Shown here piece by piece: positions 11,112 to 49,087 of a stretch of 62,846 bases of DNA. The stretch lies in contig NW_021832135.1 in the NCBI RefSeq assembly GCF_006345805.1, positions 1 through 62,846 of the forward strand, given 5' to 3'. A model generated the notes under the pieces. That model worked only from the letters and a program-made list of their open reading frames with translations, did not search any database and was not told where the DNA came from. The first letter of the stretch is position 1. Each line of letters opens with the position of its first letter. A program made the position numbers and the translations under genes. This DNA is from Octopus sinensis (taxonomy: Eukaryota).

Positions 11112-11648
11112 AAAGTAAACATCTATACTATAATAATGAAAACAGCTTATTAATTGGTTTGTAGTATGCGACTATTACTAAAGGTAAGCAATTATTAAAG
11201 CCTACATTGTCTAGAAAATTCTTCAAAATTCTAATTTATATATATTTTTCTCAAAATGTGATTTTTCAAACAATCTTTGCTGTTGAAGATCTCAGATACA
11301 GACAATTTTAATTTACTGCAGGGTTGCATTTTCTTTTAACACTGCAAAATAACGTTCCTTCCTTATCTTTTCCCTCTTTCTCTCTTACACTTTCTGACGC
11401 TACTTTTCTTCAGGCATTCCAGAAGGAACATTGCCCCAAACCATGAGTTTCATCTTGCATCAACCAAATTATGGTGATTCCAGTATATTTGTTGGATGTT
11501 GTTGAAGAAGAAAAGTGGTTTTAATTTACATGCGTCAATAGTACCAAATATAAAATTGTAATAATATGAAAAAATGATATATAGAAAAAGAAAAAAAAAA
11601 GAAAAAAGACAAGAAATAATTGCCAGCAACATTGACAGTAATTTTATG

Positions 11649-11654
11649 TTTATT
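11649..11654 (-). terminator. Polyadenylation signal, paralog A
   Basis: AATAAA ~80 nt after the stop, in a 3'UTR block shared with paralog B. Confidence 0.6.
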
Positions 11655-11733
11655 TAATTACAAACAGCAACAAATTGTATTAATTATTAGTATTTTCAGA
11701 ATTAGGGAGTTCTCATTTTTTTTAAAGTCCTGT

Positions 11734-12534
11734 TTAATAATGGCCATGTCCACCAAGACCAGCGTAACCATATCCACCGAAACCATGTCCATCAAAACCA
11801 GGTCCACCAAAACCGTGTCCTGCAAGAGCGTGTCCATCATAGCCAGCTCCACCATAACCGTATCCACCATAACCTAAACCGCCATAGCCGTATCCACCGT
11901 GTCCAGCAAGACCACCGTGACCAACAACACCACCGTGACCAACAAGTCCACCGTGACCAACAACACCACCATGACCAACAACACCACCGTGACCAACAAC
12001 ACCACCGTGACCAACAAGGCCACCGTGACCAACAAGGCCACCTGCTAGAGCACCACGACCAGCGAAACCGTACCCGCCAAAACCTCCGTAACCTGCATGT
12101 CCATCATAACCGGGACCAGCATATGCGCCATGTCCACCTTCAGCACCGTACGCAGCAGCGTGCCCAGCTACAGCACTGTGTTCACCGCCGTATGCGTTGT
12201 GGCCAGCATGAGCAACAAAGTTTCCATATTTTTCCAACATGTCGTCCTTGTGTTTGTCGTGGTCCTCGTCGTGTTCATGGTGTCCATAGTTGTCCACGTG
12301 ATCGTGTTCATGGTTGCGGAAACCGACGTCGTAGGCGGCTTTCACGCCATGTTCACCGTGTTCAGCGTAGGCGTTGTTTGCTACGTGTTCAGCAGAAGCT
12401 ACACCATGGTGGGCTTCATCGTGGCCTTCTTTTCCATAGTGTTCACCATAGTGTTCACCGTGGGGTAAAACTGAACTGTTTACCAAAAGGAAGACGGAGG
12501 CGAAAACAGCCAGGGCAAGAATGGACATGTTCAT
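11734..12534 (-). CDS. Secreted His/Gly-rich structural protein, paralog A (266 aa; histidine-rich beak protein-like)
   Basis: Intact ORF. Hydrophobic signal peptide MNMSILALAVFASVFLLVNS, acidic His/Glu/Asp head, 8 x G(L/V)(V/A)GHG hexapeptides, GYGG tail ending GHY. ATG context GCCATCATG; splice acceptor ttttcag at 12563-12565 upstream. Two paralogs in the window. Confidence 0.93.
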   Translation of the reverse strand: MNMSILALAVFASVFLLVNSSVLPHGEHYGEHYGKEGHDEAHHGVASAEHVANNAYAEHGEHGVKAAYDVGFRNHEHDHVDNYGHHEHDEDHDKHKDDMLEKYGNFVAHAGHNAYGGEHSAVAGHAAAYGAEGGHGAYAGPGYDGHAGYGGFGGYGFAGRGALAGGLVGHGGLVGHGGVVGHGGVVGHGGVVGHGGLVGHGGVVGHGGLAGHGGYGYGGLGYGGYGYGGAGYDGHALAGHGFGGPGFDGHGFGGYGYAGLGGHGHY

Positions 12535-12656
12535 GATGGCAGTTTATAGAGGACGTGGAGATCTGAAAATAAGGGAAAAGAATGATTAATTATGGTGTTT
12601 AAAAGATATTTAGAGATACAACTATATGTATAAGTGTGTGTGTGTGTGTGGTGTGT

Positions 12657-12708
<52 letters not shown>

Positions 12709-13177
12709 TAGCGTATGTGTATAAACGAACTAACATTTGTTTTTTATAAGTGTTGAAATATGTATTGTAAGATAAAAATGAGATGATAATTTGTTTTCAA
12801 ACGCAGAAACGCCGTTAGAACAACAGAAACATTGGGTAAATTACCCTTAGAAAACGGGAAAATTTGTCAACAACCAGCCATATTATTACTAGATTTATCC
12901 TACATTATATCGGTACACTTCGGTGCAACCCAAAAAACTGGTTCAGCACTCAGTATCATTAGAGTGTAGCCGGCATAATGAAGTAGGGGCTTTATTTGTA
13001 TATTCAAAACGCTTCCCGTAAATAAATAATAGTAAACCTTTCTACGAAAGGCACAAGGACTGACTTTTTGGGAGAGGGGTTAAGTCGATTACATCGACCC
13101 CAGTACTCAAATGCTACTTAATTTATCGACCCCGAAAGGATGAAAGGCAAAGTCGACCTCTGTGGCATTTAATAGTG

Positions 13178-13213
<36 letters not shown>

Positions 13214-13229
13214 TAATAATAATAATAAT

Positions 13230-13568
13230 GTGTTGATAATTCTGTGGGAGTTTGAATAATTGAGATTCTTTGGGTGTTTGAATAATTCCCTCTGGAAACA
13301 TGGGTGGTTCTTTCAACATCCTTAAACAACCCTTATTCAGGGACCTTTTGAGCGGGATGGGCTACTCAACCTGAAGAAATTTCTAACTGGGCCCCACCTG
13401 CAAGGTCATGCGCTGTTTATCTTGATATGAGATCACCATGTCGCGCACATATGGTTGTGATGCATGCGCCTGGTGTACCCTTATCAGACGAGTAGTCATG
13501 GTGGGTATACTGGGCTTCGTATATTTTACCCCAGTGTCACTTTGATGGCATGAACTGCTCTCTCACTC
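13230..13568 (+). mobile_element. Unclassified ~330-bp repeat with (AAT)n tail; second copy at 54355-54672 (-)
   Basis: Two highly similar copies, both embedded in TAA repeats; probably a LINE 3'UTR or a SINE. Confidence 0.7.
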
Positions 13569-13622
13569 AATAATAATAATAATAATAATAATATAATAAT
13601 AATAATAATAATAATAATATAA

Positions 13623-13862
13623 GACCATGAGATTGAGAATAGGAAGCCGGACATAGTCTTAATTGAGAAAGAAAGCAGACTATGTTGAATCATAGATTTT
13701 AGCCATGTCCAGTTGACAACAAGGCATGCGATAAGGAAGAAAGGAAAGTCGAGAGATATGACAGGTTAGCTTGGGAAGTTAAGCAGTTGTGGTCGATGAA
13801 AAAGGTAGCAGTAGTACCAATAATTGTAGGAGCCCTGGAACAGTGAGCAAAAATCTCGAGAG
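13623..13862 (+). mobile_element. Degraded R4/Dong-type endonuclease fragment
   Basis: DHEIENRKPDIVLIEK...YDRLAWEVKQLWSMKKVAVVPIIVGAL; follows (TAA)n. Confidence 0.75.
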
Positions 13863-13898
13863 GTACGTGTGTCTGTGAGTGTGTGTAGTATGCATACA

Positions 13899-14421
13899 TC
13901 TATGTGTTTGTGCTGTCTATATTTACTACGTACTTCTTGTCGAGAGTCAGAGTGTGTGTAAATTTCTTTTCGACCCTTTTAGAATTGGAATTTTTGAAAA
14001 GTAAAAATATTGCATTATGTAGCTTGTTATTCTCTTTAAGTGAACATTTTTCTGGTTGAAATACACCGAAAAATGGCGACACAGCAGTCAAAAAATCGTA
14101 AAAAATAGGGATTTTCATAGAAAAAACGCACCTTTTTGATGTATGATAGAAGGCTTGCTCTTCCTTCCGTAGAAGAAAAACTTCAAATCGGACCATGTTA
14201 ACACCAAAAATTATTTTCATCAAAAAGGTGCTTTTTTTCTATGAAAATCCCTATTTTTTACGATTTTTTGACTGCTGTGTCGCCATTTTTCGGTGTATTT
14301 CAACCAGAAAATGTTCACGTAAAAAGAATATCAAGCTACATAATGCAAAGTTTTTACTTTTCAAAAATTCGAATTCTAAAGGGTCGAAACAAACCCGAAC
14401 AACGCCGGGCAATACTGCTAG
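13899..14421 (+). mobile_element. Helitron-ended element containing a long internal fold-back
   Basis: ~175-bp inverted arms at 13968-14140 and 14217-14389. 3' end CCCGAACAACGCCGGG..CTAG|T is of the same type as 29804. The 5' boundary is uncertain. Confidence 0.55.
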
Positions 14422-14941
14422 TTCTCTATAAATTTCTTAAGTGGAACATTCGATCCCATTGCCCGACTTGTAGAGGCTTGTGAGCAATAATAATAATTAT
14501 TATTATTATTTACATCAAAAACACCTAAGCTCTACGAGGCTCCGGTGGGTGGGGGTGAACCCCGCTAGTGGACCCCGTAGCCATTTGATGTTTAAAAACT
14601 AGTTTTGTAGAAACTTCTTTCAAAATTCTTATTTTGTTTTTCACACATTACCTTGTGTAGGTTGAACAATGTAAAGTGTTCGAGAAAGAAACCTAGCTAT
14701 TTCTTGCAATACATACCAATACATACATCTAGAGCAAAATCTTTTCAGGGGCCCTTAAAATACTATTAAGGATCCCCGATTTTACTATTTTGTTGCGTGG
14801 ACCCCCCAAAATCTTATATGGAACTGCAGGGGCCATATGGACCCCAGTTCAGAACCACTGGATTAAACTCTTCAGGGCAGGATATTGTAAAAATGTAGCA
14901 AATGAAAAATGAAAGATATTCTAGAATATCTTAAGTCTTAC

Positions 14942-14975
14942 CTCTCGGCAGTTGGTCAAGCGATCAGTGAATGAT
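14942..14975 (-). other. Non-coding exon 1 of paralog A
   Basis: Minus strand reads CATCATTCACTGATCGCTTGACCAACTGCCGAGAG|GTAAGA. Aligns with the exon 1 candidate of paralog B; no ATG; TATA ~32 nt upstream. Confidence 0.8.
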
Positions 14976-15148
14976 GGCTAAAGAGAGGAACCCGACCAAT
15001 ATATATACAGTTATGTTCCGGCGTTGTTTTACTGGTCTGTCCAGTATTATCTTTACTGTTACAACCAGCACCTCATCCACTCATTGACTAAAAATATGTG
15101 TAGTGGCAAAGTTGTTTGGACTTTCGCATCAAGTGGCCACTCGAAAAC
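14976..15148 (-). promoter_or_regulatory. Core and proximal promoter of paralog A
   Basis: TATATATA at 15000-15007; AGATAATACTGGACAGACCAG block at 15032-15052; GAGTGGCCACTTGA palindrome at ~15129-15144. All three are also present upstream of paralog B. Confidence 0.72.
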
Positions 15149-15245
15149 GGGCAGGATTTATTTAAAGAATTTTTGTCTTTTTTTGGTCAAAGTTGCTCGA
15201 ATTTTGGAAATACAGCGTTGTGAGCGATACACACACACACACACA

Positions 15246-15288
<43 letters not shown>

Positions 15289-15569
15289 AACACACACACA
15301 AACACTAACACACATACACATATACACATACATACACACTCACATATACGCAGAAACTCACGCACACACACACACACTCACACACACGCGTACACACAGA
15401 TACACACAGATACACATACACACATACACATACACACATACACATACATACACACTCGCATACAAGCAGATACACACACGCACGCACACACACACACACA
15501 CTCACATAAGCGCACATACACAAGCACATGTGCATTTGCATCCACACGTGCACCTGTAGGAATGCATTC

Positions 15570-15606
<37 letters not shown>

Positions 15607-15641
15607 TGCACGCATATATACACACACATACGCACACATTC

Positions 15642-15674
<33 letters not shown>

Positions 15675-15973
15675 ATTTCTATGTATGTATGTTGGTATGT
15701 GTTTCTGTGTGTATGTGTGTGTATATGGGTATAATGGTGCTGCTCCAGCATGACAACAATCATTTAGCTGGAACAAATAAAATACCATATACATACATAC
15801 ATGCACACACGTACACACACATACACACACATATAATCCTTTAATCCTTTAATCCTTTAATATGTTTCAGCCCGAAGGCTGCGGCCATGTATATATGTGT
15901 ATATATATATATATATACAAATGTACATCTATATCTACAGCTATCTACATACACACACAAACACAAACACACA

Positions 15974-16017
<44 letters not shown>

Positions 16018-16152
16018 TACATACAGGGAGGGAGGGAGTGTAGTTTCCGGTTAATGTCTGTCACGCCAGTGTGATGTAATCATTCATATAGGAACACATA
16101 ACACCTGTACGTTAAATGCAATTATGCGAAATTATTCAGTACTCCTCTACAT

Positions 16153-16242
<90 letters not shown>

Positions 16243-16299
16243 ACACTTAGATTGAGAAAGGAAAGGTGAAGAAAGAAAGAAATAATATAAGAAACAGCG

Positions 16300-16366
16300 G
16301 TGTCATCATCATCACCATCACCATCATCATCATCATCGTCGTCGTCGTCATCATCACCATCACCAC

Positions 16367-16397
<31 letters not shown>

Positions 16398-16480
16398 GTC
16401 ATCGTCATCATCATGATTATCATGATCATCATCATCATCATCATCCGTAACGTCATCGTCATCATCATCGTTATTGCATG
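16300..16480. repeat. (ATC)n/(GTC)n microsatellite
   Basis: Direct reading. Confidence 0.95.
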
Positions 16481-16518
16481 ATGATTACATGTTTTTATAC
16501 ATCATATAACTTATATCA

Positions 16519-16620
16519 TATATCATATATCAGCGCTTTCGTCCATTCTGGTGGATTTTTCAAATGGAATTCCATTTGAAAAATCCACCAGAATGGACGA
16601 AAGTGCTAATATATGATATA
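16519..16620. repeat. Loop-less palindrome centred on GAATTC
   Basis: ~50-bp arms containing TCCA-ccagaa-TGGAC-GAAA-G(C/T)GCT, a degenerate hammerhead-like motif. Confidence 0.8.
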
Positions 16621-16798
16621 TATTAAGTTATATGATATATATATAAGTTATATGATGTATAAAGTTATATATATATAAGTTATATGATGTATAAAAACAT
16701 GTAATATACAAATAAATATCTGTAAATATAAAACCATCCGAATTTCTGAGTACCTCATTTCTTCTAATATAACATACCTGTACATCATCTCCAAACTT

Positions 16799-16866
<68 letters not shown>

Positions 16867-16871
<5 letters not shown>

Positions 16872-17103
16872 GGAGTAAATACATAAATGTGAAACAAGGT
16901 GGAAAAAAAGAGTACTCAAATACCAGTGGTAGAGTAATATGCTTTATTTAAAGCAGCAGAAAATTCAACAAAACCTGTTACTCTGAGTTTCACGTTCCCG
17001 TTCGTCTGACAGTTTTTGCTAGAAAAAAAACTGTCCGACGAACGGGAACGTGAAACTCAGATTAACAGGTTTTGTTGAATTTTCTGCTGCTTTAAATAAA
17101 GTA
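16867..17103. mobile_element. PLE-like fold-back element, family 2
   Basis: ~75-bp inverted arms (16940-17015 and 17027-17102) in (TA)n; a single-arm copy lies at 51576-51729. Confidence 0.55.
16975..17012 (-). ncRNA. Hammerhead-fold motif with variant core (U4 substituted)
   Basis: CUGU CAGACGA ACG-ggaa-CGU GAAA CUCAGAG UA^ACAG. Stems I-III are present; other copies at 17031-17068 (+) and 51588-51625 (+) read CCGACGA. Confidence 0.5.
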
Positions 17104-17897
17104 TATATATATATATATATATACACATGTACATATTTGTGTGTGTCTGTATTTTTCTACCTACCATCGCTTGACAACCGATGTTATTACACTAGTAATA
17201 ACTAAGTGAAGGCATGTGGCTTAGTAGTTAAAGTGTTCGGCTTACAATCGTAAGGTCGTGAGTTCGATTCCCGATGGCGCGTTGAGTCCTTGAACAAGAC
17301 ATTTTTATTTCACGTTGCTCCAGTCCACTCAGCTGGCAAAAATGATTAGCACCTGTATTTCAAAGGGACAGCTTTGTCCCATTCTATGTTATGCCGAATT
17401 TCTCCGAGTTAAACGTTAAGGGCACGCGTGTCTGTGGAATGATTTCACAAACAGGCTGTTCCGTTAATCGGATCAACTGAAACACTCATCTTCGTAACCG
17501 AACAGAGTACTAGTAAGAGTAACAACTCTTTCTAACATAGACACATGAACAATACAATCCAAAGGGCAGCAATACTTGAAGCTGTCGACCTCAGACAATT
17601 ATTGTATATTTGGCATCTATTTCTGAAGGACGCTAACAATTTTGTGCCGTGATTGTTTATATTTTATGGTCACCACAAATAATTCTCTTAACCAGACCTC
17701 ATACTCTATGGATTTATATCTTATTCCTTTTACTCTTTGACTTGTTTCAGTAATTTGACTGTGGCCATGCTGGAGTACCGCCTTTGTAAGCCTAGTACTT
17801 ATTCTATCGGTCTCTTTTGCCGAACCGCTAAGTTACGGGGGCGTAAACACTCCAGCATCGATTGTCAAGCGATGTTGGGGGTACAAACACAGACACA

Positions 17898-17951
<54 letters not shown>

Positions 17952-19425
17952 CATATATACGACGGGCTTCTTTCAGTTTCCGTCTACCAAATCCACGCAC
18001 AAGGCTTTGGTCGACCGAGGCTATAATATAAGACACTTGCCCAAGGTGCCACGCAGTGGGACTGAACCCGGAACCATGTGGTTTGTAAGCAAGCTACTTA
18101 CCAAACAGACACTCCAATGCCTTGTATAATTCTACTTTATATTTTAACAATATGCAAATTTTAGCATAAAGGAGGAATAGATATTTGAATTAATATATAT
18201 TTTTACTTATTTGTTTGTAAAATTCCGCCATCTTTTCGACACTTGTCTTCGATCAATTTATCTTTCGACAAATTCGACTTTCTATGAATATGTTTCTTTA
18301 AGGATGTCTTTCAGCAAATATATTTCTGACGAATGCTCAAGACAAATGTTTGTTATTTGTTCCTTCTTGAGCCACGCCTGGCTCATAAGGGCCGGTTGCC
18401 CCGGTTTCCTTGGCGTATAGGTTCCCCACCTGGACGGGACGCCGGTCCGTCGCAGGTGTGCTGCAAGAAGGAGGAGGAAAGAGTGAGAGAAAGTTGTGGC
18501 GAAAGAGTCAGCAGAAGTTCACCATTACCTTCTGCCGGAGTCGCTCATAAACACACACATTAGGTGTTTCGCTCATAAACACACACATTGCCCGGTCTGA
18601 GATTCGAACCAGCGATCCCTCGACTGCGTGTCCGCTGCTCCAACCACTAGGCCATGTGCATCCACGCTCAAGACAAATACTACAGTAAATTTGACTTTCG
18701 CGATGTCTTTAAATAAAGTGTAATTCACAGGTCGCTGTTTCAATTTATTACTGCTTCTAATGTATATAATGGATTTTTATTCAGTCAGAAGGCTGTTTGC
18801 CGTTTATTTACCTTTTACCGATATTGGTGGTGACTAATTTCTTCCAGGTATACGGTTGGCTGTAAGAACAATAGATGCTATCGACAACGCTCAACGCAGT
18901 AGAAATGCATTTAGCAAAACTCACTGGAAGCGGACGATTTTCGTCTGCCTCTGGCAAGGACAAGACGCAACTTCGTTGAAGCAGTCCTTCCCGCAAAGTA
19001 AATTAAATAAAATTTGGGATTTTTTGCGGAGTGGTAACAAGTGGTAACAAGAACAGGACAGTGAGAACAAAACAGTAAAAACAATAAAAAAGTAAAAACA
19101 GTAAAAAAAACACTTTACGAAGTCACATCTTGTCCTTGCCATCGAAACGTGGAGTAGTTGAAACAGGGACAACTGAAGAAGGGGAATATTCCTTGTGTTG
19201 CATGTCTCGTTTCTCTATTTGTTTTTTTTCGTTGTTCGAAAAAAAGTTCGTTTCTATGATTTTGTTTTTATGTTTTCGTTTCTCATTGTGTTCAACGGTT
19301 TTTTATGTCCTGTACCCATACATGCATGTATATATACATATTATATATATATATGTAGGTATGTACATATATGTATGAATATATACATATATTTATATAT
19401 TGTCTATATTATATACACACACACA

Positions 19426-19484
<59 letters not shown>

Positions 19485-19524
19485 GTACATGCATATATAC
19501 ATGTATATATGTATATATATATGA

Positions 19525-19845
19525 GGGTAAAGACCCCCTTCGGTCATGAATGACCATGGGATTGCACCTAGAAAGTTACCCTTCTAGACACAAGTTCGGG
19601 CAAGGTTGTTTATGGAAGACCAGCAGTCGCCCATGCATACCGGCCTCCCCTCTCCACGCCACCAGTGTTATCCAAGAGAAAGGCAAAGGCCGATACAGCT
19701 TGGCACCTGTGACGTCGCAACTCATTTCTACAGCTGAGTGAACTGGAGTAACGTGAAAATAAAGTGCTTTGCTCAAGAACACAACACGCAGCTCACAACC
19801 TCACGATCGTAAGCTCGACGCTCTAACCACTGAGCCATGCGCCTT
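19525..19845 (-). mobile_element. tRNA-derived SINE family D
   Basis: Head GGCGCATGGCTCAGTGGTTAGAGCG plus a CTTGAGCAA..CACTTTATTTCACGTT core. Other copies: 6409-6965(-), 17207-17505(+), 31460-31760(-), 32027-32327(-). Confidence 0.8.
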
Positions 19846-19895
19846 CATAAATGGAACAAAAACGCAATAGGGAGCATTAAAACTTTCGGACAGAC

Positions 19896-19946
<51 letters not shown>

Positions 19947-19951
<5 letters not shown>

Positions 19952-20159
19952 GGCCGGAATTCTGCTCCGGCATCTCGTCAGTTATTAAGGCAAACAAAAA
20001 TGCTATGAAAATTACCGTAAAATAAAGGGAAATTACCCGAATAGGGAGAAAGTAAATACTCGAAGAAAGTAAACCCACGCTCATAGAATCCGCGTATGCG
20101 CGCCTGTACATACGTACGCATGCGCGCACGAGATGCCGGAGCAGAATTCCGCCCCGACA
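19947..20159. mobile_element. 213-bp MITE with 32-bp TIRs and TGT...ACA termini
   Basis: TGT(T/C)GGG(C/G)CGGAATTCTGCTCCGGCATCTCGT at both ends (30/32); no clear TSD. Confidence 0.75.
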
Positions 20160-20298
20160 TCCGAAACTCTGAGTTTTATTATGGCAACCGACTAATTGTT
20201 ACATATTATATTATAGATAAATCCCTCTATTTACATAATATTGAGTTCTCATTCATTCTTTTGTTGTCATATTATTATTATTTATATCTATCTGTCTG

Positions 20299-20388
<90 letters not shown>

Positions 20389-20739
20389 GATACGAGCAAA
20401 AAATCCCCCCGTCCAATGGACGGTGCTGAGTTGTCAAACATTTAAACCAAATTTTCTCAAAACTACTCGTCCGACCGTCCCATAGGCCTCCCCTTTGAGA
20501 AACACCGATTTAACCTAAATTTGAGACACCAGCAAAAGAAGAAATAAAAATAGCCTTTTTTCCTATTCCAAAGAAAAACGATTTTATTCACGCAAATATG
20601 CAACCGAAGAGTTTAAAGTACCAGTAATTTTAAGGCTGTTGAGTGGGAGAACACAAACATGGTTTAAACAGTAAGCTTGGCAGGAAAGAAACGTGCCTTT
20701 AAGCAGTACAAAAACAACAAAAAATTAAAGGTTCAGTTA

Positions 20740-20948
20740 TGTACAGGTTGACGGAAGAAAAGCACATTCCCACGGCTTTATCGATCGCATTCTCACTTGG
20801 AATCGATTTTTGTAATTTTTTCAAGACTTATACACGCCCTAATACCGTCGGTATCTACATATCAAATTTGAGCGCAATCGGATGGAGGATGCTCGAGATC
20901 CTAGAAGACACACACACACAGAGACAGAACGGATTTTATATAATAGAT
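20740..20948 (-). mobile_element. Helitron-like 5' fragment
   Basis: A|TCTATTATATAAAATCCGTTCTGTCTCTGTG start; no 3' end found. Confidence 0.4.
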
Positions 20949-21260
20949 ATAGATATACACATTTATATATATATGCTTGATCAAAGCTTAATTGGGGCTA
21001 AACAACAGCTAATTGAGGTTGTTTGGTATGAGTATTTGCTAGAAATAGTAGCTATGACTCATATCACATCATGTGAAAAAAAAATTGGATGATACATATG
21101 AGAATGTTTCTGATAATGAAAACAAGCGGATTGGTCAAAATTGGATGGCTTTAATCACACCGGGAGTAGCTACCAATTCCCTTAAAATACTACTTCCTAC
21201 ACTCTGAAAAAAACCCCCCAAAACAACAAACACACAAAAATTAAAAAAAAACGCAGAATA

Positions 21261-21997
21261 CAGTAATTCCTCGACTATCGTGGGTGTTACGTTCCAAAAC
21301 CCCACCGCGATAAATGAAAATCCGCGAAGAATAAACAGTACTGTACTGTATATTTTTATAACTGTTTTTATATTTTGTATATATCTGTATATAATTTGTA
21401 TAGGCGCAGGAGTGGCTGTGTGGTAAGTAGCTTGTTTACCAACCACATGGTTCCGGGTTCAGTCCCACTGCATGGCATCTTGGGCAAGTGTCTTCCACTA
21501 TAGCCTCGGGCCGACCAAAGCCTTGTGAGTGGATTTGGTAGACGGAAACTGAAAGAAGCCTGTCGTATATATGTATGTATATATATATATGTGTGTGTGT
21601 GTGTGTGGTGTGTGTGTGTGTGTGTGTGTTTGTGTGTGTCTGTGTTTGTCCCCCTAGCATTGCTTGACAACCGATGCTGGTGTGTTTATGACCCCGTTAC
21701 TTAGCGGTTCGCCAAAAGAGACTGATAGAATAAGTACTGGGCTTACAAAAGAATAAGTCCCGGAGTCGAGTTGCTCGATTAAAGGCGGTGATCCAGCATG
21801 GCCGCAGTCAAATGACTGAAACAAGTAAAAGAGTAAAAGAGTAAAGAGTAAAAGAGTAATATCTATTTTATTATATGTGCAAAACAACGCCACGGAGGAA
21901 TCGACGTAAACTTAAATAATAAAATAATAAACCGCGACAGATGAACCGCGATAAGTGAACCGCGAAAGGCGAACCGCGATATGGCAATGGATTACTG
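21261..21997. mobile_element. pogo/Tigger-like MITE with a nested SINE (21403-21858)
   Basis: TA-CAGTAAT...ATCGCGG-type TIRs, TA TSD, subterminal AACCGCG repeats. Confidence 0.7.
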
Positions 21998-22089
21998 TAC
22001 AGCGATTAGCACTTAATCATAAGTCCGCTCGATAAGGGATTACTAAAGACTGCAGATCAACAACAATGAAAATGCAATTCTGTATACAA

Positions 22090-22314
22090 ACTGCCCCCCA
22101 CCACCACCACGCACACACGCACCGCACACACACTCACACACACAAACACGCAAACATATACATACATACATATCGATATATGAATACATATACATATATA
22201 TATATATGTGTGTGTGTGTGCGCGTGTGTGTATGTGTGTGTGTGTGTGTATGTATGTAGGTATACATATATAATGTTATGTATGCTATCATTACGGGGTC
22301 ACTGGTCTTATAGG

Positions 22315-22355
<41 letters not shown>

Positions 22356-22794
22356 TATATACCTAAATGTATATGCTTATACATATACATTAGTGTGTCC
22401 GTGTATAGACACACACACAAACGCATATATTTATATTAACGTATATGTATATAAGTTGGAGTATATATATATGTATGTTTATATATACATCATATATATA
22501 CTTAAACTTATATGCATTTACATATACGTTAGTGTGCATATATATATATGTATATATATATGTATATATATATATATACAGTCACACAGACGCACACACT
22601 AATATATATATATGTGTATACACTCACACATACAAACACACACACATATATATGCATGTACACTTGCAAATATATACTTAAACTTACATGTATATTCATA
22701 TGGGTGTATATATATGCGTGTGTACGTGTATATGTATATATATATACACATAAATATGTATACATATATATATATATATATGTGTGTATATATA

Positions 22795-22843
<49 letters not shown>

Positions 22844-23000
22844 TTTGTGTGTGTATGTATAAAATGCATACATGCATATGCATGTAATCTATATATATAT
22901 ATATATATATATGTACATGTATGCATGTATATGCGGTTTTGTGCTTGTGCGTTCGCGTACGTGCGCTGAGCGAGTGTATATATATGTTTGTGTGCTCTGT
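22090..23000. repeat. Compound (TA)n/(CA)n/(TG)n tract immediately upstream of the paralog B promoter
   Basis: Direct reading; a similar (CA)n/(TA)n tract at 15225-15720 abuts the paralog A promoter. Confidence 0.95.
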
Positions 23001-23092
23001 GCATACACCGCCCACATCACTGTATTATCAAAGTTTGAGTGGCTGTGACCAAAATTCCTTAGATCAATATAAATAACATTCTAGCGTGTTTT

Positions 23093-23263
23093 TTGAGTGG
23101 CCACTTGAGCCGGCACCAAAAAAAAGAAAAGAAAAAAAAAATGCCATTGCACCTATTTTCAATCAGTGAACAGGTGTGTTGTTTGTTTCAACATTACAGA
23201 TAATACTAGACTGACCAGCTAGACTTAGCCAGTATATATATTGGTTGATGTCTAACTGTTTTC
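23093..23263 (+). promoter_or_regulatory. Core and proximal promoter of paralog B
   Basis: TTGAGTGGCCACTTGA at 23093-23108; AGATAATACTAGACTGACCAG at 23198-23218; GTATATATATTGGT TATA box at 23232-23245. Confidence 0.72.
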
Positions 23264-23297
23264 ATCATTCATTGACCGTTTGACCAGCTACCGGGAG
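23264..23297 (+). other. Non-coding exon 1 of paralog B
   Basis: ATCATTCATTGACCGTTTGACCAGCTACCGGGAG|GTAAGA. Initiator-like TCATTC at 23265-23270, ~31-34 nt after the TATA box; homologous to the paralog A exon. Confidence 0.8.
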
Positions 23298-23341
23298 GTA
23301 AGACATTTCTTTCTAAATTTCCTTTCCTTGAAAGAACCTGC

Positions 23342-23402
<61 letters not shown>

Positions 23403-23419
23403 CCTACCTACCTACCGAC

Positions 23420-23526
<107 letters not shown>

Positions 23527-24457
23527 CGTGTAGCTTCGTTGGATCGCCTCAAGTTCTGTGATTAATTTGACACTGGACGGTGACCATAGCTGAGAGCAAT
23601 AGTCAAAGTTAGATCTATCTAACCATCTATCTTTTTTTAAAAATTTTATTTTATCCCCCCTTTTTTTGTCCTCTTTCTTTCCATTTACGATCCCTTTTAA
23701 TCGAAAACCAAACTCCCTTCTTTTACCCCCAAAAGAAAAGCTCTACCTTGTAATTTTGTCCTGTCTGTGTGCAGCCCTGTGTGGCTAATAAAGAAACATA
23801 TCTATATATATGTATATATGTACATATACACCTATGTATATACATTCATACATAGACAGATAATCATATATATATCAGGCGAGCTGGCAGAAACGTTAGC
23901 ACGCCGGGCGAAATGCTTTGCGATATTTCGTCTGCCGTTACGTTCTGAGTTCAAATTCCACCGAGGTCGACTTTTACCTTTCACCCTTTAAGGGTCGATA
24001 AATTAAGTACCCGTTACGCACTGGGGTCGATGTAATCGACTTAATCCCTTTGTCTGTGTTTAGCCCCTTGTGGGTAGTAAAGAAATATGTATTTCGTCTG
24101 CCGTTACCTGCTGAGTTCAAATTCCGCCGAGGTTGACTTTGCCTATCATCCTTTAGGGGTCGATTAAATAAGTACCAGTTACGCACTGGAGTCGATAAAA
24201 TCGACTTAATCCGTTTGTCTGTCCTTGTTTGTCTCCTCTGTGTTTAGCCTCTAGTGGGTAGTAAAGAAATAGGTATTTCGTCTGTCTTTATTATAGGCGC
24301 AAGAGTGGCTGTGTGGTAAGTAGGTTGCTAACCAACCACATGGTTCTGGGTTCAGCCCCCCAACGTGGTAACCTGGGCAAGTATCTTCTACTATAGACTC
24401 GGGCCGACCAAAGCCTTGTGAGTGGATTTGGTAGACGGAAACTGAAAGAAGCCTGTC

Positions 24458-24548
<91 letters not shown>

Positions 24549-24784
24549 ATATATTATATATATATGTGTGTGTGTGTGTGAACCAATATCGCTTGACAAC
24601 CGATGCTGGTGTGTTTACGTCCCCGTAACTTAGCGGTTCGGCAAAAGAGACCGATAGAATAAGCACTGGACTTCCAAAGAATAAGTCCTAGAGTCGATGT
24701 GCTCGACTAAAGGCAGTGCTCCAGCATGGCCGCAGTCAAAACGACTGAAACAAGTAATAAAAAAGAAAAAGAAACAGAATAAAC

Positions 24785-25612
24785 AATTGCTCAACCACTC
24801 AAATGTGGAAGTGATATATCTCGACTTTGCAAAGGCCTTGATAAAGTCGATCATGGAATGATACGTCACAAACTGCGTGATCTTGGCATAGTTGGAAAAT
24901 TGGGAGAATGGCTTCATGACTTTCTGAAGGATAGAAGTCAGGTGGTAGTAGCCAATGGGGCCGCCTGCATTAACACGCAAATGGTGAGCGGTGTTCCGCA
25001 GGGCACAGTTATGGGACTACTACTGTTCATAATGGCCATCTCGGACATGCCCTCAGCCACGCAGAGAGCCACGATCACAAGTTATGCAGATGATACAAAA
25101 GTTTCACAGGTAATACAGAACCCTGAAGACACTAAGCACCTGCAATGTGAGCTGGACAAAATATACAAGTGGGCTGAAAAGAATAGCATGCAGTTCAATG
25201 CTGAAAAGTTTCAAGCTTTATGCTATCAGCATGCAAAACTAAATGCAATACCCAATAAATACACTGGACCTGGAGGGATTGCAATCCCAGGGGCACAATC
25301 AGTGCGAGACCTGGGTATTTACATGAGTAATGATGCAACCTTTCATGTGCATGTTGCTAAATTGGTAATGAAATGTAGGCGGCTGACCGGATGGATTCTT
25401 AGAGCCTTTAGAACAAGAGACCAGGAAACCATGATGGTCCTCCGGAGGACACTTGTCCTAAGCCACTTTGACTATTGCTCTCAGCTATGGTCACCGTCCA
25501 GTGTCAAATTAATCATAGAACTTGAGGCGATCCAACGAAGCTACACAAAGAAGATAGCCTCTGTGCAGCATATAAGCTATTGGGAAAGACTCAAGAGATT
25601 AAGACTCTTAGA
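24785..25612 (+). mobile_element. CR1-type LINE reverse transcriptase fragment
   Basis: VIYLDFAKA/DKVDH (frameshift near 24838), SGVPQG, YADD, VRDLG, DYCSQLWSP, LEAIQR and YWERLKRLRL. Lies in the intron of paralog B. Confidence 0.92.
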
Positions 25613-25614
25613 GT

Positions 25615-25738
25615 CTTAATAAACAAAAGGCGAAGGCAGGTGGAGTACAAACAAAACAAATGTATTAGTATGGCGCCCAGGAATAGAAATAGAACAAGTC
25701 TTTTACGTTTCGAGCCTACGCTCTTCGACAGAAAGATG

Positions 25739-25769
<31 letters not shown>

Positions 25770-26128
25770 CACCGTGATCACCGTGACCGACCAGGGTATC
25801 AGATGTTGTTACACATCGCTTGTCACAATGCGATTCACACTGTTTTAGCCTTCAAATGACGCCACCCCGCTGGCTAAGCGAGCAGGCCGTATATATATAA
25901 CGCCATGATAGATCATTAGCTCCTACACGCATTTTTTCTCTCTTTTTTTTCTCTCCTTTTTATTCTCTCCTTTTTTCTCTCCTTGTTTCTTTCCTGTGTA
26001 TCTTTCTGTTGAAGAGCGTAGGCTCGAAACGTAAAAGACTTGTTCTATTTCTATTCCTGAGCGCCATACTAATACATTTGTTTGCTTGTACTCCACCTGC
26101 CTTCGTCTTTTGTTTATTTTCGTAAACC
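25615..26128. mobile_element. PLE-like family 3, inverted pair
   Basis: Copies at 25615-25740 and 25900-26128 in opposite orientation, separated by (TA)n and a SINE-tail fragment. Confidence 0.55.
26001..26038 (+). ncRNA. Hammerhead-fold motif with variant core CUGUNGAA
   Basis: UCUUU CUGUUGA A GAGC-guag-GCUC GAAA CG UA^AAAGA. Further minus-strand copies at 5054-5091, 25699-25736, 60429-60465 and 61649-61686. Confidence 0.5.
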
Positions 26129-26172
26129 TTCCCGTTATACACACACACACACACACACCACACACACACACA

Positions 26173-26203
<31 letters not shown>

Positions 26204-26212
26204 CACCACACA

Positions 26213-26274
<62 letters not shown>

Positions 26275-26481
26275 GGGATATTCTAAGTTTACGTATTTTC
26301 CTGATTCGTAAATATTGTTTGTTCATACAAAACATGAAACTGAAAGAAACCTTTATTATTTTTTAATACAAAACTTTCTGACACCTTAAGGGAACCAAAA
26401 AAAATTGTCTGAATGGTGTGTGTATGGCAGTTGTGGTGGCGATGGCGGTGGTATTGTAATGGGGATGGTTGAAAACAATCA

Positions 26482-26514
<33 letters not shown>

Positions 26515-27421
26515 AATAAGCTAGACAAAAAAAATCTGTACTGACGCCTTGAATAGGCAGACAAAAAAATGCTGTTTATCATGCAGCTTTGCAATAAGTT
26601 CCCAGACGACAGATTGTATCATTGTTTTGACGGAAATTGTGAAGAGCTATTGTTGAGCAGAAGGTCCAATGAAGAGCTCTCCTCAGGAGCTAGCTCAGAC
26701 GGCTTTTAAGCTCGTATCTTACATGTCCAACTCTAACTTTCCACATCCGTTTCTTCATAGCAATTTAACCCCCTCCTTCTTCTTGAGTCTTTACCTCCAC
26801 TATTCCTAATTACCCTTGGCGGCGAGCTGGCAGAAACGTTAGCACGCCGGGCGAAATGCGTTGCCAGTTACGCACTGGGGTCGATGTAATCGACTTAATC
26901 CGTTTGTCTGTCCTTGTTTGTCCCCCCCCCTGTGTTTAGCCCCTTGTGGGTAGTAAAGAAATAGATATTTCGTTTGTGTTGATGTTCTGAGCTCAAATTC
27001 GGCGGAAGCCAATTTAAATTACGCACTGGGGTCGATATAATCGACTTAATCCGTTTGTCTGTCTTTCTTTGTCCTCTCTGTGTTTAGCCCCTTGTGGGTA
27101 GTAAAGAAATAGGTATTTTGTCTGTCTTCATGTTCTGAATTCAAATGCCACCAATGCCGACTTTGCTTTTCATCCTTTAAGGATCGATAAAATTAGAATA
27201 AATTGAACCCTGAGTCGATGTAATCGACTTAACCCCTCCCTGATAGTAGTGGACTTCTAAAATTTGAAATTGATGTTGCAGTATAACTAATCCATGATAT
27301 AATTGTTGTTTTAAACTTGAATATCTTTTAATTAACATTATTAATGCTTCTTGTGATTACCTTAATTAATAACTTTTTTTCCCTTATTTTCAGATCTCCA
27401 CGTCCTCTATAAACTGCCATC

Positions 27422-28204
27422 ATGAACATGTCCATTCTTGCCCTGGCTGTTTTCGCCTCCGTATTCCTTTTGGTAAACAGTTCAGTAATACCCCACGGTG
27501 AACACTATGGTGAACACTATGGAAAAGAAGGCCACGATGAAGCCCACCATGGTGTAGCTTCTGCTGAACACGTAGCAAACAACGCCTACGCTGAACACGG
27601 TGAACACGGTGTGAAAGCCGCCTACGACGTCGGTTTCCGCAACCATGAACACGATCACGTGGACAACTATGGACACCATGAACACGACGAGGACCACGAC
27701 AAACACAAGGACGACATGTTGGAAAAATATGGAAACTTTGTTGCTCATGCTGGCCACAACGCATACGGCGGTGAACACAGTGCTGTAGCTGGGCACGCTG
27801 CTGCGTACGGTGCTGAAGGTGGACATGGCGCATATGCTGGTCCCGGTTATGATGGAAATGCAGGTTACGGAGGTTTTGGCGGGTACGGTTTCGCTGGTCG
27901 TGGTGCTCTAGCAAGTGGCCTTGTTGGTCACGGTGGTGTTGTTGGTCACGGTGGCCTTGTTGGTCACGGTGGTGTTGTTGGTCACGGTGGACTTGTTGGT
28001 CACGGTGGTGTTGTTGGTCACGGTGGACTTGCTGGACACGGTGGATACGGCTATGGCGGTTTAGGTTATGGTGGATACGGTTATGGTGGAGCTGGCTATG
28101 ATGGACACGCTCTTGCAGGACACGGTTTTGGTGGACCTGGTTTTGATGGAAATGGTTTCGGTGGATACGGTTACGCTGGTCTTGGTGGACATGGCCACTA
28201 TTAA
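27422..28204 (+). CDS. Secreted His/Gly-rich structural protein, paralog B (260 aa)
   Basis: Intact ORF nearly identical to paralog A: 7 instead of 8 hexapeptides, plus L22I, two H>N changes and one G>S. Acceptor cccttattttcag ends at 27393. AATAAA at 28287 and 28297. Confidence 0.93.
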   Translation: MNMSILALAVFASVFLLVNSSVIPHGEHYGEHYGKEGHDEAHHGVASAEHVANNAYAEHGEHGVKAAYDVGFRNHEHDHVDNYGHHEHDEDHDKHKDDMLEKYGNFVAHAGHNAYGGEHSAVAGHAAAYGAEGGHGAYAGPGYDGNAGYGGFGGYGFAGRGALASGLVGHGGVVGHGGLVGHGGVVGHGGLVGHGGVVGHGGLAGHGGYGYGGLGYGGYGYGGAGYDGHALAGHGFGGPGFDGNGFGGYGYAGLGGHGHY

Positions 28205-28286
28205 ACAGGACTTTAAAAAAATGAGAACTCTCTAATTCAAAAGATAAATATCAATCCATAATACAATTTGGTGCTGTTTGTTATTA

Positions 28287-28302
28287 AATAAAAATTAATA
28301 AA
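28287..28302 (+). terminator. Polyadenylation signals, paralog B
   Basis: AATAAA at 28287-28292 and 28297-28302. Confidence 0.6.
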
Positions 28303-29476
28303 TCAATATCCTTGTTACTAGTAGTTATTATTCGCCATGCGGTGCTCCAGCATGGCCGCAGTCAAATGACTGAAACAAGTAAAAGAGGAAAAAAATAAAA
28401 GAGAAATATTGCAGCGACCTCATGGAATCGTTAAAGAATCGGAAAAATGCTTTGCATTATTAGTTCCGGCTCTTTAGGTTCTATTCCCGTCGAGGTCAAC
28501 TTTGCCTTTCATTTGATTTTTATTGTGGTCGATAAAATAAAGTACCAATCAAGTACTGGGGCCAATTTAATCGATTAAACCCTTTACTCTAAAACTGCAG
28601 GCCCTGTGTCAAAATTTCTCTTCTTTTCATTTGTTTATTATTTTGTTTATTTTCACGAATATAACAGATCAATGTATTTAATTAATACCAACGTTAGCAC
28701 CAGTATTGTAGCTGTTGTTATTGTTCTTTACCATATCAACATTGATTGAACACATCTAAGGTCAGAGACACTCCAGCCACGACCGTCCCAATTTTTTAGG
28801 GGTATTTTATTAATTTCTTTTCCTAAGGCGGCAGGCAGGGCGTGTCATGAGGGAGACTTTTGTTCCTTGTTCTAGTAGGGCGAACGGCAGCGTAGTAATC
28901 CCTTCATTGGCTAGGATCGTCGTTATCATTGCCGTTTCAGCCCTTATAAGCCCTGATTCATCAAAATTTCGATGAATGGCAAGCCAGCCATGACCATCAC
29001 GATTTTACGAGAAAATAAAAAAAAATATATTGGTCATTGTGACCTTTCATTGTTGAAGACGGTAGGCTGAGTCTGATTTTAGTGGAAACTAATCATTAGT
29101 TAGAGTGGGGCTTGTCTTTTTTTTTTTTGGCCCAGAAAATCAAAAACATATCGGGAATAATAAACAAGCAGACTCATCATATAAGATACAGATTGTTTAT
29201 TAGTAGGTCTGGGTATTTCTTTTAGTGGAATTTAACGTTAGGGGGCTCAGGAGGTCTCTTTGTTATACTCTTTTACTCTTTTACTTGTTTCAGTCGTTTG
29301 ACTGTGGCCATGCTGGAGCACCGCTTTTATTCGAGCAAATCGATCCCATGACTTATTCTTTGTAAGCCTAGTACTTATTCTATCGGTCGCTTTTGCCGAA
29401 CCGCTAAGTGACGGGGACGTAAACACACCAGCATCGGTTGTCAAGCAATGCTAGGGGAACAAACACAGACACACAA

Positions 29477-32554: not shown

Positions 32555-33824
32555 CGAGGGGCGTTCAATAAGTAATGCCCCTGACCCACTTACCATAGCA
32601 GTAGAGCAACGACACTTGGCACAGTTATTAGTCTTTTCCTACATAGGAACTACCCAGAGTTATGCATTTCTCCCATCGTTTGATACAGCTCTGGAGACCG
32701 TTTTTGTAGAAGACCCCAGCTTGGTCCTCCAACCACGACGTGACTTCAGAAATCAAGGCTGCATCATCTGGGAAACGCTTTCCTTTCAAAATCAACTTCA
32801 TGGCTGGGAAGAGGTGAAAATCAGAGGGTGCAAGGGGAGGAGTTCATAGCTGCACGCCTGTGCTTCTGATCTGGCGACACGCGAGTTGTGGACCGGAGCG
32901 TTGTCCTGCAGGAGGAGGATGCCTTTGCTGATCTTGCCCCGCCTCTTGATTTTGATAGCTTCTCTTAATTTCCTCAAAAGTGAAGCATAATAGGCTCCTG
33001 TAATTGTGGTACCCTTTGCCAGGAAATCTGTCATTACTACTCCGTCCTGGTCCCAGAAGACTGTGAGCATAACCTTGTCAGCGGAGGGCTGCACCCTTGC
33101 CTTCTTTAGAGGAGGTGAGTCACGGTGCTATCACTGCATTGACTGGGCTTTGGTCTATGGATCATAGTGATGGACCCAGGTTTTATCCTGTGTGATCAGT
33201 CTTTTGAAAAATTTTGACTCATCTTCTTGGCACATCTCCAAATTCATCCTCGAGCACTCAACGCGTTTTTGCTTCTGGAAAGGTGTGAGCAACCTGGAAA
33301 TCCATCTGGCAGACACCTTTTGCATATGCAAATGGTCATGAATGATAGTTTCCACAGACCCGGTACTAATCTTGACCTTATGGGCTATTTGGCGAATAGT
33401 TATGCGTTGACCTTCCAAAATGGCAGCCTCAACTTGACGGACAGACGTCTCATCAACGGCAAAAGGGGGCGACCAGATCTGGGAGCTGTTTCCACAGAGT
33501 TCCGACTATGTTTGAATTCACAATGCCAGCGTTTTACAAGGTCATATGATGGGGCATCATCACCATAAGTTACTTTCATTTCATCAAAAGTCTCCCGTGG
33601 TGTGCATCCTTTCATATACAAAAACCAGAACACTGCTCGACACTCAACAGGCTCTATTTCACACTTGACTCAGTTCAAACACCTGTAAATCAGAAACCAC
33701 AATTAGTTCAGAGCTGTAATTCGCCACTTAATCTATAGAGGTATAAATAAGTGCACATGCAAAATTTCAGCTAAATCAAACAAATGAAAGTGGGTCAAGG
33801 GCATTACTTATTGAACGCCCCTCG
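32555..33824 (-). mobile_element. Full-length (1270 bp) mariner transposon, defective transposase
   Basis: 37-bp TIRs CGAGGGGCGTTCAATAAGTAATGCCC(C/T)TGACCCACTT with 1 mismatch; TA TSD. Mariner motifs RSGRP, WISRLL, WVHHYDP, KVMLTVFWD and LLQDNAPVH. Start codon mutated to ATA (33655-33657), frameshifts, and the YSPD motif is deleted. Nested in the (TA)n of a SINE. Confidence 0.95.
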
Positions 33825-41314: not shown

Positions 41315-41881
41315 TTGGGTCGTCCGGAAAGTTCGTGTCGATTTTTAAAGGAAAGAAAAAGGTCAATAAATACTTGCCATTACATTTTTAATCAACCAAA
41401 TATGAACCATTTTGTTGCACAATGCGTCTCCATCTTTCCTTTAACTTGAAAATACCCCCTTCCCAGAATTGAGGTGGTTTCATGGCAAAAAATTCATCAA
41501 GGCATCTTTTTACGTCATCCAAGGAATTGAAATTTTTACCATTAAGACTATTCTGCAGGGGCCTGAATAAGTGGAAATCCGAAGGAGCAATATCTGGTGA
41601 ATATGGAGGGTGGGGTAACACATCCCAGCCGAGCTGCAGCAATTTTTGTCTGGTTCCCAAAGCATCAAAGTGCCGAAAATGAACTTTCTTATCTTCCATT
41701 TTAAAGGGTTACAGAATTAACACATGTTATAGGAACATAAACCTTCTTCCACGAAATGATATCTTTAACTGTGCTCTAAATGGAGGTGTAGTCAAATCCT
41801 ATTTTATGGACTCAACCATGTTCTAAAATAAGTCGAAAGGTAAGCTACTATAAATCGGCACGAACTTTCCGGACAACCCAA
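41315..41881 (-). mobile_element. Internally deleted mariner, second family (567 bp)
   Basis: TIRs TTGGGT(T/C)GTCCGGAAAGTTCGTG(C/T)CGATTT, TA TSD. ORF fuses the N-terminal MEDKKVHFRH to the C-terminal HPPYSPDIAPSDFHLF...WRRIVQQNGSYLVD. Confidence 0.93.
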
Positions 41882-43724: not shown

Positions 43725-44438
43725 CCGAATAGATGTAATAGTCGGGACAGGAATTCTATATAGTGGTTAACCTGGGGTTAAAAAGCAACACAAGCCAAGT
43801 TACCGAGACTTATTCTACAGAGGGTCCGTGACAAGGGTCGGTAGTGTGGAATGAAAGATGTGAATGAATCTAAAGACGTAGAGCGATGGAAATAAATGTG
43901 AAGAATTTAGTTCTTAGTTCGAAGGTATGTCTTCCTAACCAAGGGGCCATCCAGTGGATCTTTTCGGTTTGACCGGCAATTTAAAAAAATAATTTCCACG
44001 TAACTAAACACTTTTAAACTTCTTATATTGGTAGAATGTGTTTATAAAACATCTTTTTCTCTCTTGAGAAAATGCTATAGTTTGTAAGATATTTGTTGTT
44101 TTCTTTTCTTCAATTTCTGCAATTTCAACCAATCAATGACGTCTATTGAGGTGAAAACATTCTGTGCTGTATGAATATGTCCCTCGTTTAAGAAACAGAT
44201 TGGGTTTATTTACATTTCTGAAGCAAAAAAAAAACCCTAACTAACCCTAACCCTAAAACAGATTGAAATGCAATATATCGATACTAAGGTCATAATTATG
44301 GGTGACAATTTCATATGATACCGCTAGAAAAAACTGCCGTTCAAAGCGAAAAGATTCCATCCAGCCAATATGAAATAAATGTAATAATAAAAAAGCAAAA
44401 CAGATATTTAATACGTACAATTTGGGTGAAAACACCCG

Positions 44439-44444
44439 TTTATT
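44439..44444 (-). terminator. Candidate polyadenylation signal, paralog C
   Basis: AATAAA ~107 nt after the stop; a second AATAAA lies at 44530-44535. Confidence 0.4.
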
Positions 44445-44550
44445 CAACAACAGGTAAGTAAATCAATACGGTTCAGGTTGGCGTTGAGGTTCATCTTTTG
44501 GGGATTTAAGTGTGATAAAAATAAAAGAATTTATTTTTACAAAGTTATTT

Positions 44551-45237: not shown

Positions 45238-45399
45238 GATGGCAGTTTATTGAGGACGTGGAGATCTGAAAATAAGGGGAAAAAAATTTGTTAATTAAGG
45301 TGATTATAAGATGCATTAATAATGTTAATTAAAAGATATTCAGGTCCAAAACAACAATTATATCATGGATCAATTATACTATAATATTGGGAGAATAAT

Positions 45400-46594: not shown

Positions 46595-46652
<58 letters not shown>

Positions 46653-49041: not shown

Positions 49042-49087
<46 letters not shown>

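Follow-up and report, generated by a model that had tools for sequence, protein, structure and literature searches.

The window analyzed here is the entire contig VCDQ01004605.1 (62,846 bp) of Octopus sinensis assembly GCA_006345805.1. The list of its open reading frames (ORFs) contains three intact paralogs, A, B, and C, whereas the first-pass annotation of this DNA had named two. A and C lie on the minus strand and B on the plus strand, and together they would form a cluster with three members, all of them lineage-restricted genes of Octopus sinensis. We propose that each gene has two exons, i.e. a promoter with TATA box and initiator (Inr), a short non-coding exon 1, an intron, and an exon 2 that carries the coding sequence (CDS). 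As stated, this model is probably correct, and the predicted arrangement agrees with all features for which the sequence allows a check. The coordinates of all features are collected in Table 1.

Three paralogous genes and their products

The A, B, and C proteins share an N-terminal hydrophobic signal-like segment, which is followed by a non-repetitive N-domain rich in His, Glu, Asp, and Ala and then by a repeat domain of Gly, His, Tyr, and Val (Phe). The mature proteins have masses of 20-24 kDa, isoelectric points (pI) of 5.9-6.1, and a combined Gly, Ala, and His content of 58-61%, and they are devoid of Cys and Trp. Each contains 10-13 GHGxx units plus GPGYD/GPGFD motifs. The products are predicted to be secreted, low-complexity proteins rich in Gly, His, Ala, and Tyr. 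A Pfam scan of the three proteins detected no domain, they are not present in a clustered collection of 15 billion proteins, and their peptide strings gave no match in the library of papers searched. When the 135-residue N-domain was compared with 1.84 billion representative sequences by phmmer, a single marginal match was obtained, repeat protein P0001, which was judged to be unrelated.

Further copies were sought in the window by tblastn, and an 11-residue scrap at 39360-39392 was all that was found. The CDS-like fragment of 40 nt to which it belongs (39353-39392, minus strand) is 90% identical to the CDS of A and encodes GDEHSAVAGHA. It was rejected as a fourth paralog because it is too short, and it may be either the degraded scrap of a fourth copy or a chance match. 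A (TCA)55 microsatellite at 16303-16469, which reads as poly-His in one frame, was the source of spurious tblastn matches to the His-rich proteins.

At the 5' end of the coding exon, the 38-nt string TTTTCAG/ATCTCCACGTCCTCTATAAACTGCCATC-ATG (here and below, the slash marks an exon boundary) is identical in A (12532-12569, minus strand) and B (27387-27424, plus strand), and the version of C (45235-45272, minus strand) has 1 mismatch. This puts the predicted start of exon 2 at 28 nt before the ATG, at positions 12562 (A), 27394 (B), and 45265 (C). In each of them 15 of the 16 positions from -20 to -5 of the acceptor are pyrimidines, followed by CAG/A. All three genes have an in-frame TAA 15 nt before the ATG, so that the ORF is not extendable upstream and any exon 1 must be non-coding. 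These data confirmed, for A and B, the earlier claim that both CDSs begin 28 nt past a strong acceptor and that exon 1 is non-coding. The context of the start codon is GCCATCATGA, and AATAAA follows the stop codon at a distance of 79-106 nt in A, B, and C.

It might be argued that some or all of the copies are silent duplicates or pseudogenes whose upstream modules have no current function, because neither an expressed sequence nor a homologous protein was found in the searched collections. We regard this as very improbable. All three ORFs are intact across long, mutation-prone low-complexity repeats, the signal peptide, the Kozak context, and the poly(A) signals have been kept, and the empty searches may reflect the content of the databases.

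Promoter islands and predicted first exons

Upstream of A and B, two islands on opposite strands align with each other. The TATA motif GTATATATATTGGT occurs at exactly 2 sites in the window, 14995-15008 on the minus strand and 23232-23245 on the plus strand, where 0.15 would be expected. The 24-mer CATCATTCAYTGAYCGYTTGACCA, which begins with CATCATTC, was found only at 14953-14976 (minus strand) and 23263-23286 (plus strand). The predicted exons 1 of A and B are identical at 29 of 35 positions and both terminate in GAG/GTAAGAC, and the TATA motif and CATCATTC are separated by a spacer of 18 nt (A) or 17 nt (B). The first-pass annotation had described two exons of ~34 nt that align, end in GAG/GTAAGA, start with an Inr-like string, and follow a shared upstream motif at the same distance. 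All of this was borne out, the distance being equal to within 1 nt and the string ATCATTC being present not only in A and B but also in C. The candidate transcription start sites (TSSs) of A and B point away from each other and are 8,289 nt apart, in agreement with the 8.3 kb given before. The description of the interval as otherwise consisting of repeats is approximately right: as a lower bound, at least 65% of positions 14976-23263 are tandem repeats or multicopy within the window.

Over ~380 nt, the A and B islands have an overall pairwise identity of ~57%, which rises to 73% between position -110 and the donor and is concentrated in perfect blocks. A value of 79% reported by the aligner was rejected because it is a column statistic and not a pairwise identity. 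Matches amount to 14 of 14 positions in the palindrome element, 14 of 14 in the TATA motif, 29 of 35 in exon 1, and 7 of 7 in the donor. Identity is as low as 39% in the spacer between TATA and Inr and 46% in the intron from +9 to +54, values that cannot be told apart from those of shuffled controls (35-44%). Conservation rises exactly at the Inr and falls directly after GTAAGAC, and both steps would be expected of an exon 1 whose TATA box stands at a fixed distance. The introns of A and B have nothing in common but independent, dispersed copies of a short interspersed nuclear element (SINE), and the islands therefore stand out from fully decayed surroundings. The block-wise conservation supports a footprint of the kind expected of functional elements. 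The proposal that the conserved islands mark functional cis-elements is supported by this pattern and by a third module upstream of C, described below. Scans of the whole window for Rfam families and tRNAs gave no match; hence, the islands do not correspond to any known RNA gene.

The palindrome element GAGTGGCCACTTGA is fully conserved between A and B and lies ~130-170 nt upstream of the predicted start sites. It holds the 10-bp palindrome AGTGGCCACT as well as a CACTTGA / TCAAGTG half site of NK-homeobox-like type, and it is a candidate transcription factor site.

Gene C provided an independent test. The pattern ATCATTC-N{20,35}-AGGTAAG was drawn up from the A and B modules alone, and both strands of the window were scanned with it. 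Three matches were obtained in 62.8 kb, one upstream of each paralog on the sense strand, at a chance expectation of 0.03 for a match. The match belonging to C lies 4.3 kb upstream of that gene and is preceded at ~30 nt by its own TATATAAGG. A scan for strong donors in the 17.5 kb upstream of C returned a single sense-strand AG/GTAAG, at 49563, with AATCATTC located 38 nt upstream and TATATAAGGGTG another 30 nt upstream. The string AGGTAAG is found nine times in the window; upstream of each gene there is exactly one on the sense strand, and this one is the predicted donor. No 9-mers beyond the TATA element are common to the upstream regions of A, B, and C. What survives in C is the TATA element, the Inr, a CGYYTGAC motif, the exon length, and the donor, and the survival of these elements only is good evidence for selection acting on them. 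The module of the third paralog thus lends independent support to the predicted two-exon structure.

According to the proposed architecture, RNA polymerase II would use a focused promoter with a TATA box ~30-35 nt upstream of the Inr-like ATCATTC, and transcription would begin at the Inr and pass through a non-coding exon 1 of 35-39 nt. In all three genes, the A residues of (C)ATCATTC are preceded by TATATATA or TATATAAG, the start of which is 30-35 nt away, and ATCATTC is invariant across the three modules. TCATTC fits the arthropod Inr consensus TCAKTY, to which it is an initiator match, and largely fits YYANWYY. If CA is taken as +1, the distance to the TATA box is 30-32 nt. The predicted exon 1 would end in AG/GTAAG, the donors of the predicted introns being AG/GTAAG(A/G), and the intron to be removed would be of the U2-type GT-AG class, 2.4-4.3 kb long and filled with microsatellites and with fragments of SINEs and long interspersed nuclear elements (LINEs). 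The junctions used would be 14942>12562 in A, 23297>27394 in B, and 49563>45265 in C. Exon 2 would supply a 28-nt 5' untranslated region (UTR), the whole CDS with the signal peptide first, and a 3'UTR of ~100 nt with AATAAA. The predicted spliced 5'UTRs (exon 1 plus 28 nt) contain no upstream ATG. Counted from the 5' end of exon 1 as given in Table 1, their length is 63-67 nt. The choice of TSS widens this to 59-67 nt, since a start at the second A of ATCATTC would take off a few nt. The upstream blocks, i.e. the palindrome AGTGGCCACT and a block with AGATAA, may bind tissue-specific factors.

Such an architecture is ordinary for eukaryotes and is nothing new in kind. The TATA spacing, the Inr-like TCATTC, and the strong U1-complementary donor AG/GTAAG are shared with generic metazoan promoters of the TATA plus Inr type, and the polypyrimidine tract, the CAG acceptor, and the start codon in exon 2 are shared with generic metazoan genes. 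The octopus genes differ from the latter, at the predicted sites, in the shortness of exon 1 (35-39 nt) and in introns that consist nearly entirely of repeats.

The islands could also be real regulatory DNA serving a different transcript, one with a more upstream TSS and longer exon 1, with extra small non-coding exons inside the introns, or with alternative first exons in promoters derived from transposable elements. Extra exons would be compatible with the sequence, the introns are rich in transposable elements, which often supply promoters, and the upstream blocks shared by A and B are missing from C, so that regulation may vary between the copies. We nevertheless consider such transcripts unlikely, because conservation dips in the spacer of 17-18 nt and climbs again at the Inr, because each gene has only one AG/GTAAG donor upstream on the sense strand, and because there is no other collinear conservation of A and B within the introns. 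Another conceivable use of an acceptor 28 nt before the ATG is the attachment of a trans-spliced leader instead of a cis exon, given that an acceptor near the start codon is typical of leader-accepting genes in other phyla. This is extremely improbable in view of the matched cis donor and the promoter features that lie ahead of every one of these genes, and we know of no description of spliced-leader trans-splicing in molluscs.

Several observations weigh against the two-exon model and are considered together here. The palindrome of GAGTGGCCACTTGA and the other upstream blocks shared by A and B were not found in the upstream region of C, and neither nhmmer with a profile of the A and B islands nor blastn-short found a third island in the window. 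The C module was located by the architecture pattern and the strong-donor scan and not by alignment. Addition of TATATAWKGGT to the pattern returned the same 3 matches with 0.00 expected, but this extended pattern was composed after the C module was known. The TSS within CATCATTC is ambiguous, as it may lie at CA or at TCA, and further small exons may lie within the predicted introns. A word-index protein search with full-length B, residues 1-125 of B, or the 135-residue N-domain alone yielded no homologue, exact-sequence protein look-ups matched only contig VCDQ01004605.1, and a 39-nt DNA probe from the UTR/CDS gave no match among metagenome contigs.

Table 1. Features of the three genes and repeat elements in the window. 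Exons 1, introns, and promoter elements are predicted; aa, amino acids.
Feature	Position	Strand	Remarks
Gene A promoter island	14977-15259	-	aligns with B island
Gene A palindrome element GAGTGGCCACTTGA	15129-15142	-	
Gene A block AGATAATACTGGACAGACCAG	~15032-15052	-	
Gene A TATA motif GTATATATATTGGT	14995-15008	-	
Gene A predicted non-coding exon 1	14942-14976	-	CATCATTC...GAG, then donor GTAAGAC
Gene A predicted intron	12563-14941	-	2,379 nt, GT-AG; SINE copy and microsatellites inside
Gene A exon 2	11630-12562	-	5'UTR 12535-12562; AATAAA 11649-11654; 3' end approximate
Gene A CDS	11734-12534	-	266 aa
Gene B promoter island	22980-23262	+	
Gene B palindrome element	23095-23108	+	
Gene B block AGATAATACTAGACTGACCAG		+	
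Gene B TATA motif	23232-23245	+	
Gene B predicted non-coding exon 1	23263-23297	+	then donor GTAAGAC
Gene B predicted intron	23298-27393	+	4,096 nt; (ATCT)46, tandem SINE-like units, LINE fragment
Gene B exon 2	27394-28315	+	5'UTR 27394-27421; AATAAA 28287-28292 and 28297-28302; 3' end approximate
Gene B CDS	27422-28204	+	260 aa
Gene C core promoter	49602-49640	-	TATATAAGGGTG starts at 49630, ~30 nt upstream of (C)AATCATTC
Gene C predicted non-coding exon 1	49563-49601	-	CAATCATTC...AACAG, then donor GTAAGG; absent from first-pass annotation
Gene C predicted intron	45266-49562	-	4,297 nt; last ~400 nt 81% identical to B intron end
Gene C exon 2	44420-45265	-	5'UTR 45238-45265; AATAAA 44439-44444; 3' end approximate
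Gene C CDS	44551-45237	-	228 aa
Transposable element remnant	24858-25619	+	
Transposable element remnant	32801-33094	-	
Transposable element remnant	41388-41699	-	
SINE-like units	23924-24222, 26868-27146, 45402-45814, 57623-58204		plus ~25 more sites (e.g. 13077-13170)

The contig is typical cephalopod DNA. Tandem repeats make up 22% of it, and together with DNA present in several copies within the window alone they amount to at least 59%. A very AT-rich stretch near the contig end (60000-62000) has a GC content of 23% and is mostly (TA)n. A LINE reverse-transcriptase fragment (24858-25619, plus strand; Pfam RVT_1, E=1e-10) lies within the predicted intron of B. The window also contains a mariner-type transposase fragment (Pfam Transposase_1, E=8e-19) and a second transposase-like ORF for which the Pfam scan gave no match. 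A SINE-like unit of ~150-185 nt is very common in the window, frequently as tandem pairs, and was without match in the tRNA and Rfam scans. The results of a scan for bacterial promoters and terminators were disregarded because the DNA is eukaryotic.

Duplication history and gene conversion

The copies at 11615-12606 (A), 27349-28329 (B), and 44554-45679 (C) were compared segment by segment. Identity over the initial 433 nt of exon 2 is 98.8% between A and B, 97.7% between A and C, and 97.5% between B and C. For the same pairs the identities are 97.6, 74, and 74% in the C-terminal repeat region, 82, 47, and 39% in the 3'UTR, 73, 50, and 46% in the promoter core, and 47, 47, and 81% in the last 400 nt of the intron. 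The pairings are thus discordant: the end of the intron joins B with C, and the 3'UTR, the promoter, and the C-terminal repeats join A with B. As judged from the aligned segments, the identities fit no single tree. One tandem pair of the SINE-like unit is common to the introns of B and C and occupies the same place in both.

Over the initial 405 nt of the CDS, 4 synonymous and 1 non-synonymous codon differences separate A from B. Synonymous sites are far more alike than they should be in copies as old as the promoters suggest, which indicates that gene conversion has homogenised the beginning of exon 2 together with small adjacent stretches of intron in all three copies. The near-identity of exon 2 is accordingly a product of homogenisation as well as of selection. 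The partners of the conversion are inverted and direct paralogs 15-33 kb apart. Known cases of concerted evolution of inverted or tandem paralogs share with this cluster the near-identical coding segments, including their synonymous sites, the diverged non-coding flanks, and the discordant pairings. The present case differs in that three copies lie on one contig and in that the tract boundaries are deduced from steps in identity.

The first-pass annotation had proposed an inverted duplication of the whole gene. The collinear units of A and B in opposite orientation support this, but a single event is too simple for three genes with mosaic identities. The whole unit of promoter, exon 1, intron, and exon 2 would have been duplicated, once in inverted orientation, giving rise to the head-to-head pair of A and B. 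Introns and flanks would then have decayed and been overwritten by repeats, and the core promoter, exon 1, and the splice signals would have been kept by selection. The 5' part of exon 2 would have been held near-identical in the three copies by gene conversion. The third gene with its module and the contribution of gene conversion to the history go beyond the earlier description.

Because the conversion tract covers the acceptor, the conservation of the acceptor alone is no proof of its use, and the argument for splicing rests on the upstream modules. The genes could be effectively intronless, with transcription starting from AT-rich DNA just before the ATG, an acceptor conserved by the conversion tract, and islands that are decaying relics of the duplication. 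The tract reaches 35-400 nt into the intron, and TATA-like strings are found near exon 2, namely TATAAA at -17 and, in B and C, GATATAAT at about -128. TATAAA at -17 would, however, put the TSS inside the CDS, past both Met codons, and the element at -128 is not present in A and would give rise to B and C transcripts carrying an upstream ATG. Moreover, the status of a relic explains neither the block-wise footprint nor why TATA, Inr, exon length, and donor persist in a C module that can otherwise not be aligned. We therefore hold intronless genes to be improbable and retain the two-exon model. Most of the doubt that remains about it concerns promoter islands with another transcript structure, and intronless genes, silent copies, and trans-splicing account for smaller shares.

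Resemblance to squid histidine-rich beak proteins

The composition of the A, B, and C proteins invites comparison with squid histidine-rich beak proteins (HBPs), in which Gly, Ala, and His together exceed 50%, the pI is ~6, and pentapeptides GHGXaXb and GXGXA occur (PMC11931252). According to a published report, HBPs and suckerins can be identified in decapodiforms but not in O. bimaculoides (PMC9068888). The octopus proteins have in common with the squid proteins DgHBP-1, DgHBP-2, and DgHBP-3 the predicted secretion, the high Gly, Ala, and His content (58-61%), a pI of ~6.0, and the lack of Cys. The layout of a non-repetitive His-rich N-domain followed by a repetitive Gly/His-rich C-domain is likewise shared. 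The 10-13 GHGxx units of the octopus proteins include GHGAY, GHGGY, and GHGHY and are accompanied by GPGYD/GPGFD. HBP genes are clustered in Doryteuthis and Euprymna, and so are the octopus genes A, B, and C. The octopus repeat differs in being mainly a hexapeptide GHGG[V/L/F][V/G] (GHGGVV, GHGGLV, GHGGFG) and not GHGXY; only 1-3 of the octopus units are GHGx[Y/H], and GPGYD/GPGFD takes the place of GAGFA. For the N-domain, no HBP homologue was detected by phmmer (1.84 billion representatives) or by the word-index search, although the libraries may not include the DgHBPs. The octopus proteins, as deduced from their genes, resemble HBPs in composition and layout and are best described as similar to HBPs, not as members of the family.

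It is possible, and we suggest it only tentatively, that the cluster encodes octopod counterparts of the HBPs or another His/Gly-rich coacervating biomaterial, e.g. of the sucker lining or the radula matrix, with the upstream modules acting as a switch for specialised secretory cells. If so, the TATA/Inr/exon 1 modules together with the palindrome AGTGGCCACT and the AGATAA block of A and B would constitute a cis-regulatory switch for a cell type such as the beccublast.

For annotation, the model would provide complete gene structures, from promoter to poly(A) signal, for three genes that ORF- or homology-based procedures would miss or truncate. It predicts three precise splice junctions and indicates the locations at which these unannotated genes would be switched on. 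With regard to genome evolution, the cluster would be a compact example of core promoter and splice signals outlasting the replacement of their surroundings by repeats, combined with coding exons homogenised by conversion. For cephalopod biology, it would place histidine-rich products resembling structural or coacervating proteins in a lineage in which this class was reported as not found, and the promoters, once known, would offer a handle on the cell type that produces them.

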